From positions 73,523-137,522 of the forward strand of contig JAWQFM010000020.1 in assembly GCA_033442325.1 (NCBI GenBank): 64,000 bases of DNA, written 5' to 3'. Shown here piece by piece: positions 46,665 to 61,311 of this stretch; the first letter of the stretch is position 1; each line of letters begins with the position of its first letter. Under the pieces are notes generated by a model. That model saw only the letters and a list, made by a program, of their open reading frames with translations. It was not told where the DNA came from and made no database searches. A program made the translations under genes and the position numbers. Source of the stretch: Salpingoeca rosetta (lineage: Eukaryota; Protista; Choanoflagellata).

Positions 46665-49600
46665 TCAGCAATCGTAATCGCCTTCTGGGAGAACAAGACC
46701 AAGGGGAAGCCCCATCTTCTTGGCTTTTGCCTCGTCGTGACAGTACACAATCTGAGGGGTGTGTGTGTGCATGTGCGTGCATGTGAAGGTGTGCGTTGGT
46801 GTGAGAAAGGTGAAGGTGAACGTGCGTGCGTGCGTGGTGGACGCAGGTTCTTGGGAGGGGGTGGAGAGGGCACATGCTTTAATGCGAGTGAGAGCGAGAG
46901 ACGGACACACACACATACACACACGCATACGCACACACACACACACACATACGCACACATGTTGCAGGTACGGACCACGTCTGCGACGGTGGAGAACACG
47001 CGGGAGCGGTTGTTGAAGGTGTATCCTTCCTCGCACGGGTCAATCAGGCCGTTCCAAATCTTGTTCCTGCAGAACACACAGGCCCAAGCACAACAGCGTA
47101 GTACGTGAGCCAAACAAACGTGGACTTTCACACAAAACAACCACACAAAACAAACGAAAACAAGCACACGAAACGAAACGAAAGCAAATCAAACAACACA
47201 CACACACACACACACACACACACACACACACACACACACACACACACAAAGGCAGGTGTGCTGCTTACTCCTTTGCCTTGACGCTGATGGCGTAGCTGCC
47301 GGCGCGGCTGCTCTTGCGCACAACAAATGTGCCAATCGGTCGAGAGGACAGAAGGGCACGGGCCTAGTGGTCGCGAACGACAAGTAAAGCGCATTTGTTT
47401 TGTTGCATGAAGGATTTGTTCAAGAGGCAACTTGTGCCATGGGTGTGTGTGCGCGTGCGGGGAGGGGGCCGAAATGGCATGTCGAAGAAGAGAATACATA
47501 CATCGCCAGGGCACACAACACACACACACACAACACATACACACAAATACACACAATACATATGCACACACCTCGTCACGCGAGAGACGCGGCTGGAACC
47601 ACGTGCTCATTGTCTTCGTCACCTGGAAATCCCAGCATGGCAGCGCGCATACAATCGCGTGACAGGGCACATTTGAATGAGGAGGCTGGCATCACATGCA
47701 CAGCCGAAAGCGTACACATATGCACACACATGTACGCACTCGTTCACACACACATGCACACACACACGTTCACACACATGTACACGCGTGTATGTTGCGT
47801 TGCCGCACCTGCTCGTGGACTTCCTTCGTCAGTGGCTGCGTGCGACCGTACCTGCCAATGATGACACATAAACAAACCAAAAAAGTGTCAGCGATGCCAA
47901 GGGAGTGCAACACAACGCACCCCGTGGCAGGGAAGCCCAACAAACATCCACACATAAAATAATACGCACACATAATACACACAGAGACAATATACACATG
48001 GAGGTGCGCACGCACACGAGCGACTACATACGCATTCATTTGCACACATACACGCGTACACAGGCACACACTAACAAACACACACACATGCATGACGCAC
48101 TCTTGCTGTGAGATGAGGGCCACATCGTAGTCACCCTCCTTGGTGACAGTGTCCGTGTAATCCTCCATATCCACAGCAGCAGCCGGTACGGTGTCAGTCG
48201 CATCGGTCGATGCCAGCATCGTCGCCACAGACTGCGCCTGTCCCTCCTGCTCAATGGTGTCGTACGCGTGGTCCACCCCCGTGTCCTTCGCGGTCACATC
48301 AGGATCGGTGACAGCCGCGTAGTCGTCATCACCGTCGTCATCGTGCGAGTCTGTGTTTGCCTCCCCGTACACGGCCATGTCTGGGAGCGCCTCCGACCCG
48401 CCGTACACTTGCAGGTTCGGGTCAGCGTCGACGCTCTGCACAGTGGCGGTGATGCCATGATTGGGAAAAGCGATATTGTTTTCGTTGTTGTTGTTGGTTG
48501 TTGTTTGTGTTTTTGGGGAGGGTGTAATTGGGATTGCAGGATGTTGAGGTGAGGCCGCGTAGGTGCATGTGTTCATGTGAAGTGCATCAGAAGCCAAATC
48601 TACCAACACCGCAGACCACAGGAGGGGCTGGGACGCAAGCGGTGTACATACGGGTGGAAGCGCTGATTGTTTTCTGCTTAGCGGAAGAAACAAACCAGCA
48701 GGTGTGAATGACCGAGTGAGAATGATGAAAAGGCAAGTATAGGGACACACGCACACACACACAAAGAACACACAACACACACAGCACACACACACAGACA
48801 CACAGACACACAGACACACAACACACACGGACACAACACACAGCACACGCACACACACACACGGACACAACACACAGCACACACACGCACACACGGACAC
48901 AACACACACGGACACACACACGCACAGACACACAAAGACCACGGTCGCACAACACACCGCTTGAAGGAGGCGACGGGCGCCTCGTAGCGCTCGCCCTCGT
49001 CCGCCCGGGATGCGTCGCTGTATCGTGGGCAGAGGACATGAACAGGTGGGACATACAGGAGTGTGAGCAGCGTGTGAGGATTGATGACGCATGCGTGTGA
49101 ACAGGAAGGCAAGACCATCATCGCAATCAATTCGTTTGTGTGCATGTGTGTCACGACCGTACTTGGAAGGCAGGCCCTTTGAGGCCTTGGTGCTGGTGTT
49201 GCCAGTTGTGTCGTCGGCAAACCCGTAGACGGCTGTGTCTCCTGCACTCGCTGCAGCACGGCTCAACGCGGGATTGGCGTAATCGTACGTGTTGTCCTGA
49301 CACCCACACGCAACAGGAAAGGCGTGAGGAAAAGAATTGCTTGCGCACGCATCACCAGCACCGCAGTAAACGCGCAAGAGCATGGTATGAGGCCATCACA
49401 CCAATGAACGTACGGGTTCATTCACGGACGAATAGTAGACAGAGGACGACGGCTGGTAGTCTGGTGGCGGCGGCATGGCACGCGCACCGCGCTGTTGCTG
49501 CGTTGAGAGAGCACACAAACGCACGCACGCACAGAAAATGGAACAACACAGCACACAGAATGAGGGTAACCGAGAGACATACAAAGCATCAGCTGTGAAT

Positions 49601-58600: not shown

Positions 58601-61311
58601 GTGTCAAATTATGCAATGCAAGTGTGCGTGCGCGTGTGTGTGTGTTGCGTGTTGTGTGTGTTTTTGTGTTGCGTGTGAGAGAAGGTCGGAACAATTGGCC
58701 ATGTTCGCCCTGTTGTGCACACATGTACACATTCCCAAACACACGCGCGCGCGTTCCAATGCTTGCAAGCATGTGCACATGAGCGCATGTGGTGTTGAGC
58801 ACTACCGAAATCGACGCGGAAGTCGATGTCGTCATATCTTTGACCAGAGCGTTCCCTGATCATGCCCTGATGGCAGGTATGGTGGTGGTGGTGGTGGTGG
58901 TGGTGGTGACGATTGGGGTGGAGCCAATCACGAGCTGGCGATGCAGATGTACGCGAGACAACTTGCACTCGGCGCACACCAGACACCACGACGGTAGCAC
59001 AGCAAACAGAGAACGACTCACCTCTGTGTATGGGTTGCTGGTTGAGTACACGGCACCACAGCCGTACCCGCTGCAGTCAATCTGGTAGGCATTCAATGAA
59101 ACAAAAACAGTACGAGAAAAAGACAGGGAGTGTTCGTGTGCGTGTGTGGGCGACAGAGAGTGTGTGTGCATGTGTGTACGTGTGTGTGTGTGTGCGAAAG
59201 AGAGAGAAAGACAGAGAGAGTGTGTGTGTGTACGCGTGTGCGACAGAGAGACAGACAGACAGACACACACACACACACAAACGCACAAACAGTCAGTCAG
59301 ACAGCAGAAAGAGAAAAAGAGAGAAAAGGGGAAGGCAAGGTGAACTGCGCACTGATGATGTGATATGAATAGGGGTGTGGAGTTCCTGTGTGCACGGGTT
59401 ACTTGAACGGATAAGCGAGCTCAGCGCCATCAGGAAAGTGCAGCAGGCTGACAAACAGAGACAAGGGTAGTCAAATGCAAGCGCGTGTGCGATGTGCACT
59501 TCCACTTACGCTGACAGAATAAGTGCGTCCAGCATACACTTGCGGCTTTGTGGCCATGTAGAAGCTGGTGCGAGGGACAGGATCGTTGTTATTCAACCCC
59601 GCAAGGTACACTGCGAGCATGTGCGCGTTTGGGGATGGGGGGGGCGGGTGAGTTCAGCGATGGGACGATGGCAACACCGTTATATTACCTCCGAGGCATG
59701 ACAACAAGGTAGGTAGGCACAGCAAGTGACAGCAAGTGACACAACAACAGCAAATACAAGCACATGCGCGAGTCTGAATTGTGCGCTGCACATCCACCTC
59801 AAGCCAAGCCATCATTCCGCCATCACAATCGATCCATCGAACACACCTTCAGCGGTGTCCAGCACCGTTCCACCCTCTCCTTCCCGGAATTTCACCTAAT
59901 GGCATCAATACATGTGCGTGCGGGATGAGAAGGGGAAATGAACGAGTGTGCATGCGTGCGAGTGTGTGTGTGTGTGTGTCTGTGCGTGTGTGTGTATGAT
60001 GCAGCATCGCGTGCAGTGAGGATCGCAGTGCATTGACAGTCTTTGCAAGCAGATTATGAACAGCGCTCTCATCCAAAATGCAAGGCAGGCAGGAGTTGGC
60101 ACGAGCGCAGGATCTCCACGCACGGTTGCTGTGAAGCCGTAATACAGTGCGCCCAGGCGCAGGAGCACGCGCCCAACACGGCCATCCCTAACAAGTTGTC
60201 GAACACAAACAGAGGGTAATCGCATCATCGGCGGTGTGCTATGAGTGAACCAGGAACCACACACAACGGCAGTGCAACCCACACACAGTCAAGCACCGCC
60301 ACACCTGTGCACTTTGAAGGACTGCCAGAAGTTGCTGTGGACGCTCACGCGGGACGTCTGCCCAAGGTCGTTGTTCACTTGTGGGATGTAAACTTGACCC
60401 GCAGCTGTGTGTGTGTGTGTGTGTGTGTGTGTGTGTGTGTGTGTGTGTGTGTGTGTGTGTGTGTGTGTGTGTGTGTGTGTGTGTGTGTGTGTGTGTGTGT
60501 GTGNNNNNNNNNNNNNNNNNNNNNNNNNNNNNNNNNNNNNNNNNNNNNNNNNNNNNNNNNNNNNNNNNNNNNNNNNNNNNNNNNNNNNNNNNNNNNNNNN
60601 NNNCTTTTGCGTTAGTTTCTTTTTTGCGTCCCGGATTGCATATTTCAGAACACGATATACAATGTTTCCCTACACCCATTTGTCTGTCGTAGGTGACGCA
60701 TTGCGCACGCGCTCCGTCTCAGCTTCGTCGCTCTCCGCTGACGTCTGCACCCTGGTTGCGGTCGTGGACATCAAACGTTGAATCATCATGCTTAATCACT
60801 GATGCTCCGTCGATTACTTCTTTCACGCTTTGTCTTCGTACACCGTACTCTGGATCATAATCACACGGTAGTCGTGAGTCAATACTGATCTCGCCTAGAC
60901 TCTTCGCGGCTTCTCTGTCCGCGTCATCTGCATGAGTGTCGCCGCGTGGAGAGCTGGCAGAGGTGTGTTCCCTCTCCGCCACACCGCCACTTTTTCGAGA
61001 TGGACGCCCTTGCCCGCTGCGACCGAACCCTTGCCGAGGCGTGATTTGCTTTCCGTGTTTAGAAATTTGCAGCTCCGGTTTTTCCTATGATAGTTTGTGT
61101 TTTCATCAGGGATACACACACACACACACGCACACACACACACACACACACACACACACACACACACACACACACACACACACACGCACATGCATACACA
61201 CGCACCTGGCTGGACGTTGATCGCCAGGGCGAGCAGCCCCAGAAGCACCACGGCCAGCCGTGCTGACGGCCGACTGCCGCTGCCACACGCAGAGAACGCC
61301 ATCGCCAACAT
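46665..61311 (-). CDS. Large single-pass receptor: signal peptide, N-terminal beta domain, TNFR/furin/GCC2_GCC3-like Cys repeats, two DUF5011-like Ig domains, TM helix, Tyr-rich tail, C-terminal SH2
   Basis: Signal ...LAVVLLGLLALAINVQP|AAG. Repeats of the type T.TSDRVC and C..C..GTYQ. DVSPPTITLRG..DPGAT..GTYTLTY. TM IIAIGAAAGVVVIALIVVIFVI (~50285-50350). SH2 WFQPRLSRDE|ARALLSSRPIGTFVVRKSSRAGSYAISV...FSTVADV|IVYC. Stop at 46665. Confidence 0.8.
55603..55731. repeat. Intronic (CAG)n(CAA)n trinucleotide tract
   Basis: Seen directly; it lies just after a probable donor of a furin-repeat exon. Confidence 0.9.
60504..60603. other. Assembly gap (100 N)
   Basis: N run. Confidence 1.
60604..61111. 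mobile_element. Putative DNA-transposon terminus inserted in intron 1 of the receptor gene
   Basis: A ~500-bp microsatellite-free block abuts a (CA)n tract sharply at ...catcaggg|at. Minus-strand end reads CCCTGATGAAAAC. The other end is lost in the gap. The flanking exons splice in frame without it. Confidence 0.4.

Follow-up and report, generated by a model that had tools for sequence, protein, structure and literature searches.

Whether a single membrane protein can act as receptor, docking scaffold and phosphotyrosine reader at once is the question raised by PTSG_07734, a gene of the choanoflagellate Salpingoeca rosetta located on a 64,000-nucleotide (nt) stretch of contig JAWQFM010000020.1 (assembly GCA_033442325.1, positions 73,523 to 137,522; this whole stretch is referred to as the window, and its numbering is used for the coordinates below). 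In animals the receptor, the tyrosine-rich scaffold and the SH2 reader reside on separate proteins, and choanoflagellates, the closest relatives of animals, sometimes fuse them. Here, we describe the gene structure, domain content and conservation of PTSG_07734, together with its published expression. It is confirmed to be one real, expressed gene on the minus strand, and its product is predicted to be a type I surface receptor that crosses the membrane once and has no enzyme domain. We put the probability that this chain functions as a kinase-less receptor-scaffold, combining all three roles, at roughly 0.6.

The coding region (46665-61311, minus strand, as for every exon, domain and codon located below) consists of 40 exons and 5229 nt including the stop codon, has only GT-AG introns, and encodes 1742 amino acids (aa). 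Its product is deposited as XP_004991534.1 and F2UHM1, and is called "hypothetical protein" in NCBI, UniProt and EukProt. The exon map was generated by a script that placed the 1742-aa database protein on the minus strand with exact codon identity required; a manual exon reading of the 3' half, made before the database model was found, agrees with this map except for one 22-nt micro-exon. From the N-terminus, the protein has a signal peptide, a beta-rich N-terminal domain, TNFR-like and ephrin-receptor-like repeats, two DUF5011 domains, a transmembrane helix, the tail and an SH2 domain. Pfam and motif searches of PTSG_07734 found neither a Pkinase family nor an HRD motif, in line with the original prediction that it contains no kinase, and the protein is thus not a receptor tyrosine kinase (RTK).

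The cytoplasmic tail is acidic, free of cysteine and rich in tyrosine motifs. Exons 29-36 (47809-50032), distinguished by their composition, their tyrosine conservation and the lack of a Pfam family, encode its 16 tyrosines; measured from the end of exon 28 to the beginning of exon 37, the tail (aa 1369-1642) has 274 residues, 16 of them Tyr (5.8%) and none Cys, with Asp plus Glu at 16.8%, and is probably disordered. Its tyrosines stand in PYANP (Y1384), GYDN (Y1395), PPPPDYQP (Y1423), SVYYSSV (Y1430/1431), TYDYANP (Y1441/1443), VYGF (Y1461), RYEAP (Y1493), VYGG (Y1520), VYGE (Y1532), DDDYAAV (Y1548), AYDTI (Y1567), EDYTD (Y1602), GDYDV (Y1612) and QEYGRT (Y1622), and a 17th, Y1740, lies in the EGDYDC with which the protein ends, as had been read from the sequence. 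About ten tyrosine motifs were listed in the original prediction, and all of these are present; that count was too low, exons 30, 31 and 34 with Y1423, Y1430/1431 and Y1622 having been missed. Three sites have the YxxP form (YANP twice, YEAP), and relatives have between 1 and 5. I/V-Y-G is a preferred substrate context of Src-family kinases, and phosphorylated YxN and YxxP sites are of the Grb2 and Crk types, respectively. Residues 1375-1640 match no Pfam family and contain no death domain or other recognised TNFR signalling module (short TRAF motifs were not examined).

A whole-library protein search yielded four full-length relatives, all of them complete open reading frames (ORFs) of transcript assemblies: Microstomoeca roanoka (1645 aa, 48.6% identity), two proteins of S. 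infusionum (1752 and 1587 aa, 38.1 and 38.2%) and S. urceolata (1935 aa, 27.6%). Each aligns with residues 1 to 1742 of PTSG_07734 and ends in an SH2 domain, so that by alignment the family is conserved in at least four cultured choanoflagellate species. M. roanoka keeps 12 of the 16 tail tyrosines versus 69 of 258 (27%) other tail residues (Fisher p 1.4e-4), and the two S. infusionum proteins keep 8/16 versus 21% (p 0.011) and 6/16 versus 6% (p 6e-4), figures that may be raised if the aligner anchors on tyrosine. As far as these alignments show, the tail tyrosines are selectively conserved and under selection. Conservation is greatest at the second Tyr of V-Y-Y-S-S-V-N, found in 5/5 aligned sequences, with YYSS[VI]N nearly universal. 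Other recurrent forms are V/Q-x-Y-G (Y1461, Y1520, Y1532 and Y1622), R-Y-E-A-P or D-Y-V-A-P, M-E-D-Y, and Y-A-N-P (twice in S. rosetta).

Exons 37-40 (46665-47622) encode the SH2 domain (W1643 to about P1736), EGDYDC and the stop codon, an assignment made from PF00017, PDB matches and a structure model. The match of the whole protein to PF00017 (39.1 bits, cut-off 21, E 8.4e-10) covers residues 1643-1717 of 1742 and all but the last of the 77 profile positions (1-76), and exon 38 by itself also exceeds the cut-off of 21 (27.5 bits, E 3.5e-6); the domain thus lies close to the C-terminus, as in the published choanoflagellate class of transmembrane proteins with YxxP motifs and SH2 domains. A model of aa 1618-1742, built on a 25-sequence alignment, has a predicted local distance difference test score (pLDDT) of 90.8 and a predicted template modelling score of 0.82, and its 500 best Foldseek matches have E <=0.001, with all matches among those listed being SH2 domains. 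A confidently predicted helix (1630-1638) packs ahead of the SH2 domain and bridges the exon 36/37 junction, so that the exon on the tail side is linked to the SH2 fold. Arg1650 (alphaA2) and Arg1668 (betaB5, in FVVRKS; codon at 47316-47318), the latter being the phosphate-binding Arg of SH2 domains, are invariant in 6/6 family members, and Ser1670 (betaB7) is invariant in the five-sequence alignment and Gly in S. urceolata. The SH2 domain with a phosphotyrosine-binding Arg that had been proposed from the FVVRKS motif is thereby upheld by the PF00017 score, the invariant Arg1668 and the modelled fold. In S. urceolata the domain falls below the Pfam threshold, is recognised at E 1.5e-8 by an SH2 profile built here, and retains the two arginines as well as the family signature.

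By sequence, the nearest solved structures are the p85alpha C-terminal SH2 domain (E 2e-9) and the SHP2 N-terminal SH2 domain, with PLC-gamma SH2 also matched, at 20-29% identity; by fold, the nearest are the SH2 domains of ZAP-70, p85 and SOCS (template modelling scores of about 0.63-0.65, normalised on the 125-residue model), and the SOCS matches extend over an N-terminal helix resembling the one predicted in PTSG_07734. A six-frame search of the genome (55.4 Mb, 68 contigs) gave 110 SH2-profile matches, and the S. rosetta assembly yielded no close paralogue of the cytoplasmic part. The nearest other genomic SH2 exon, on contig C3, was rejected because its gene is of a different type, having His at betaD4 and lacking W-N-G-L-I. 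That gene is split (C3:2546000-2555999, about 7900-9300 therein), contains FVVRPS and the betaD4 His, is 48% identical over 54 aa, and has tyrosine motifs on both sides (QYTADQYMDV and GGYNYMDV).

The last residues, EGDYDC ahead of the stop codon (46668-46685), are part of an acidic-Cys end present in 5/5 sequences with the extension, four of which end in -Y-D-C or -Y-E-E-C and the fifth in -T-D-C. This fifth is one S. infusionum paralogue, which ends ...LTDC without a Tyr, and S. urceolata lacks the whole extension; across the alignment the terminal [D/E]-C is therefore at least as conserved as the tyrosine. Y1740 lies about 5 residues past the last conserved SH2 residues, which on general SH2 geometry is too short a distance to reach its own pocket on the far side; autoinhibition within one molecule through this tyrosine is therefore unlikely, and binding in trans is possible. 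Like STATs, PTSG_07734 has an SH2 domain and then a conserved C-terminal Tyr on the same chain, an arrangement that would allow trans pairing; unlike STATs, it is membrane-anchored, has no DNA-binding part, and has one paralogue without the Tyr but with D-C. The STAT C-terminal Tyr is about 30 residues past the SH2 domain. As a separate observation, the acidic-Cys terminus (46668-46676) suggests PDZ-type recognition or a lipidation signal apart from any phosphotyrosine role.

On the extracellular side, exon 1 (61206-61311) provides the start codon and the signal peptide (aa 1-36), with the hydrophobic core LAVVLLGLLALAI, and aligns with the signal peptides of orthologues. Exons 2-7 (58806-60404) encode the conserved N-terminal domain (aa 36-181), which is predicted to be all-beta, has 27 invariant columns among the proteins of four choanoflagellate species and has no Pfam match at E up to 5. 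Its model is of low confidence (pLDDT 52), and structure matches are to generic jelly-roll or CBM-like folds at background level (Z <=8); the leads obtained for this region (DUF4082, lectin and PHR from Atlas, and CBM6/35-like) were weak or at background, and no fold was assigned. It could be an undescribed ligand-binding domain. Exons 8-24 (53071-58549) are 17 small exons covering about 570 residues (aa 181-747) of TNFR/NGFR-type and furin-like cysteine-rich repeats, with the cysteine repeats of the TNF receptor superfamily recognised in the whole protein by TNFR_c6 (Pfam, E 1.4e-27).

Exon 25 (51394-52855, 1462 nt, aa 748-1235) encodes ephrin-receptor-like repeats and, of the two DUF5011 Ig-like domains, the first and the beginning of the second, and in Pfam matches Ephrin_rec_like in 5 stretches (E 1.5e-18) and Bact_surface_Ig-like (E 1.2e-13). 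The remainder of the second Ig-like (DUF5011) domain is encoded by exon 26 (51006-51139; Bact_surface_Ig-like E 5.4e-9), the best Bact_surface_Ig-like stretch in the whole protein being residues 1203-1271. Exon 27 (50623-50754), placed by exon mapping, encodes a juxtamembrane extracellular stalk (aa 1280-1323). Among the 105 ectodomain cysteines, 102 are kept in M. roanoka and the two S. infusionum proteins (S. urceolata is outside this count). The predicted transmembrane helix (aa 1345-1368; 50283-50354, inside exon 28 at 50272-50417) is, beyond the signal peptide, the sole 19-residue window of strong hydrophobicity and has the same location in all relatives; the single helix and extracellular N-terminus so predicted are also those of the published choanoflagellate class. 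The TNFR_c6 and Ephrin_rec_like type I ectodomain is shared with RTKs and TNF receptors, from which PTSG_07734 differs in having no kinase, no death domain and no cytoplasmic family besides SH2.

Published RNA sequencing (RNA-seq) shows where the gene is used. The S. rosetta gene set was built from expressed sequence tags and RNA-seq of eight conditions, and gene models were refined with RNA-seq (Fairclough et al. 2013). In these data PTSG_07734 carries SH2, TNFR, furin-like and PKD InterPro entries and received 147-1710 reads per condition, with fragments per kilobase per million mapped reads of 60.6, 43.2 and 45.7 in three samples of thecate (attached) cells, 22.6 in swimmers and 6.2-17.2 in rosette or chain colonies, and a log2(attached/colony) of 2.23 (P 3e-6) (Fairclough et al. 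2013). The gene is thus expressed in all eight conditions and highest in substrate-attached thecate cells. In Additional files 10-12 of PMC4054682 the captions are offset by one from the column headers; we followed the headers, and these match the cluster title of Additional file 7. Attach/Colony headers stand in the file captioned 'upregulated in colonial cells', and Swim headers in the 'thecate' file.

In the receptor-scaffold reading that we favor, the ectodomain presumably binds an extracellular or matrix ligand, one that is plausibly associated with the substrate or theca, given that thecate cells express the gene most. Once engaged or clustered, the ectodomain would bring copies together and expose the tail to cytoplasmic tyrosine kinases; Src-type kinases may then phosphorylate it, several of its sites having the V-Y-G form, and the resulting phosphotyrosines would recruit SH2 adaptors, Crk at YxxP and Grb2-type adaptors at YxN. 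Phosphotyrosines in trans would be the ligands of the protein's own SH2 domain, whether on sister copies, leading to clustering, or on a kinase, RTK or other receptor, leading to recruitment and processive phosphorylation. Tail phosphorylation in trans by cytoplasmic kinases and clustering through SH2-phosphotyrosine pairs, both put forward in the original prediction, would be parts of this reading. Taken further, a self-complementary chain with one SH2 domain and up to 17 phosphorylatable tyrosines might polymerise in trans into a membrane cluster or condensate, and, as the gene is highest in thecate cells, this could be a substrate-attachment switch; we offer this extension tentatively and consider it rather improbable.

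Three findings weigh against the receptor-scaffold reading. The tyrosine density of the tail (5.8%) is not significantly higher than that of the ectodomain (4.0%; p 0.09). The YxxP sites number only three, and the YEAP/YVAP position alone recurs across species. Finally, the betaD4 His, which is present in p85 C-terminal SH2 and in most S. rosetta SH2 domains, is replaced by Asn1689 within an invariant W-N/D-G-L-I; this Asn for His and the family-specific W-N-G-L-I set the domain apart from the SH2 domains of p85, SHP2, ZAP-70 and SOCS. A betaD4 His is common among SH2 domains and not universal. With Asn at this position, ligand preference is not readable by homology and phosphotyrosine binding is not guaranteed.

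Among the alternatives, the one that survives best is that the SH2 domain mainly docks the receptor on other phosphoproteins, such as an activated RTK or a cytoplasmic kinase, which would then phosphorylate the tail processively, making PTSG_07734 a co-receptor or membrane substrate that does not self-associate. The SH2 domain looks canonical for phosphate binding and the V-Y-G sites match the established substrate preference of Src, both of which suit such docking, and potential partners exist, as 376 of the 469 kinases of S. rosetta are Ser/Thr and the other 93 or so would be tyrosine kinases (Fairclough et al. 2013). Docking of this kind is, however, not separable from self-binding, nor are the two exclusive, and we regard docking in place of self-association as a possible account with a minor share of the probability.

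A different account, which we judge unlikely, is that the SH2 domain is non-canonical, recognising an unphosphorylated ligand or serving as a structural module, with the tail tyrosines being mostly endocytic sorting signals of the YxxPhi or NPxY-like type. The betaD W-N-G-L-I, with Asn in place of the His that most S. rosetta SH2 domains have and Gly next to it, would fit this account, as would several YxxV/I sites (YSSV, YAAV and YDTI). It is opposed by the conservation of both phosphate-binding arginines in every member and of betaB7 Ser in all but S. urceolata (Gly), and by the acidic surroundings of most tail tyrosines, which suit kinase substrates better than AP-2 signals.

That the ectodomain, tail and SH2 domain belong to one gene is borne out by further relatives and by splicing. 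A 10 kb contig of another organism (SRR29340314) contains one 1021-aa ORF that runs from the ephrin-like repeats to the first half of the SH2 domain and takes in both Ig-like domains, the transmembrane helix and the Tyr-rich tail; the remainder of the SH2 domain lies beyond two introns, which match introns 38 and 39 of S. rosetta in position. Separately, we observe that positions 6001-9923 of this contig are nearly intron-free where S. rosetta has 15 introns, and that its protein has repeated E-Y-A-E-P and Y-E-Y in the tail and a C-terminus of ...PEDTAV without Y-D-C. A word search with the cytoplasmic part returned the gene itself and M. roanoka only, and one with the last 263 aa returned one environmental contig. 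A 958-nt contig (JGI sample 3300018716; run ERR1719299), which we take to come from the Tara Oceans eukaryotic metatranscriptomes, carries an intron-free ORF 61% identical to PTSG_07734, which enters at the contig edge and reads MEDY...YG.T..., then SH2, then ...VYDC-stop.

The one chain with a Cys-rich ectodomain, transmembrane helix, multi-Tyr tail and SH2 domain that the original prediction had drawn is therefore supported by an exact gene model, four full-length transcripts, a single ORF and an intron-free contig, and the placement of the SH2 exons in a separate gene, which it had named as a refutation, is not borne out by orthologue transcripts, ORFs, exon 36 splicing or the published annotation. 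An erroneous merger of two genes, one for a kinase-less receptor that stops once the tail is complete and the other for a small SAP-like protein with an SH2 domain only, initiated at the Met of ...KTMSTWF (exon 37), can be dismissed as scarcely credible: an in-frame ATG does lie 3 codons upstream of the SH2 Trp, but exon 35 read on unspliced gives about 110 codons of TG-repeat-coded sequence and then a stop, the 43-nt exon 36 has good splice sites and restores the frame to the SH2 exons, the predicted helix spans exons 36 and 37, and four transcript ORFs, an uninterrupted ORF in genomic sequence and a contig free of introns all join tail and SH2.

The window has two runs of N, one of which, an assembly gap of 100 N (60504-60603, no strand assigned) flanked by (CA)n, falls within intron 1 of PTSG_07734. 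This intron (61205-60405) is the longest in the gene, with 801 nt including the 100 N, and the remaining introns are 117-428 nt. The frame is kept across it, exon 1 leaving in phase 1 and exon 2 entering in phase 1, and in three transcriptome-derived orthologues the signal peptide directly joins the GQVYIP... segment (exon 2 in S. rosetta) with no extra residues. Because the orthologue N-termini are continuous and the phase is kept, no exon is hidden in the gap and no coding sequence is lost. Intron 16 contains a long trinucleotide run (about 55520-55760) whose frames read poly-L, poly-Q/N/T or poly-V, and (CA)n/(TG)n microsatellites occur in most other introns of the gene, where they yield many spurious C/V/H/T-rich ORFs.

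The closest published counterparts are other choanoflagellate proteins. Of five choanoflagellate transmembrane proteins described in a multi-YxxP survey, three have SH2-like domains at the C-terminus (Shigeno-Nakazawa et al., Sci Rep 2016, PMC5043372), namely S. rosetta PTSG_05573 and M. brevicollis A9VAL3 and A9V449 (PMC5043372). The same study measured binding of pYxxP by a choanoflagellate Crk SH2 domain, including peptides of another S. rosetta transmembrane protein, and proposed a BCAR1-like YxxP logic for the transmembrane proteins (PMC5043372). PTSG_07734 resembles these proteins, as judged by their described architecture, in its single transmembrane helix, kinase-less cytoplasmic region, several YxxP sites and near-C-terminal SH2 domain; it differs in having 3 YxxP sites versus 10 in PTSG_05573 (5-10 in the published S. 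rosetta members), and in conserved motifs of its own (YYSS[VI]N, V-Y-G, MEDY and the terminal Y-D-C). It is not named in the text or the available supplement of PMC5043372, and a text search of the available papers found none naming it. The original prediction overstated the novelty of the locus, as its SH2 and TNFR annotation has been public since 2013 (Fairclough et al. 2013) and the class was published in 2016 (PMC5043372). PTSG_07734 is a genuine new and well-conserved member of this class, the architecture of which was already known; new here are the species range of the family, the selectively conserved tyrosines, the W-N-G-L-I signature, the acidic-Cys C-terminus and the link to thecate expression.

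Outside the choanoflagellates, PTSG_07734 differs from LAT, PAG/Cbp, NTAL, nephrin-type proteins and p130Cas/BCAR1, with which it has no detected homology in Pfam; their ectodomains are tiny or of another kind, and they lack an SH2 domain of their own. Like PTSG_07734, they have no enzyme domain and carry multi-tyrosine tails, which in their case are phosphorylated by Src-family kinases and recruit Grb2-, Crk- or Nck-type adaptors. To our knowledge, transmembrane SH2 proteins are absent from animals. If the tentative proposal of trans polymerisation is true, a single protein would do the job that animals divide among a receptor, a LAT or p130Cas scaffold and an SH2 adaptor. Knockouts in S. rosetta are now routine, and PTSG_07734 offers a route to phosphotyrosine signalling as it may have been before RTK/adaptor pairs, and to receptor clustering by a receptor's own SH2 domain.

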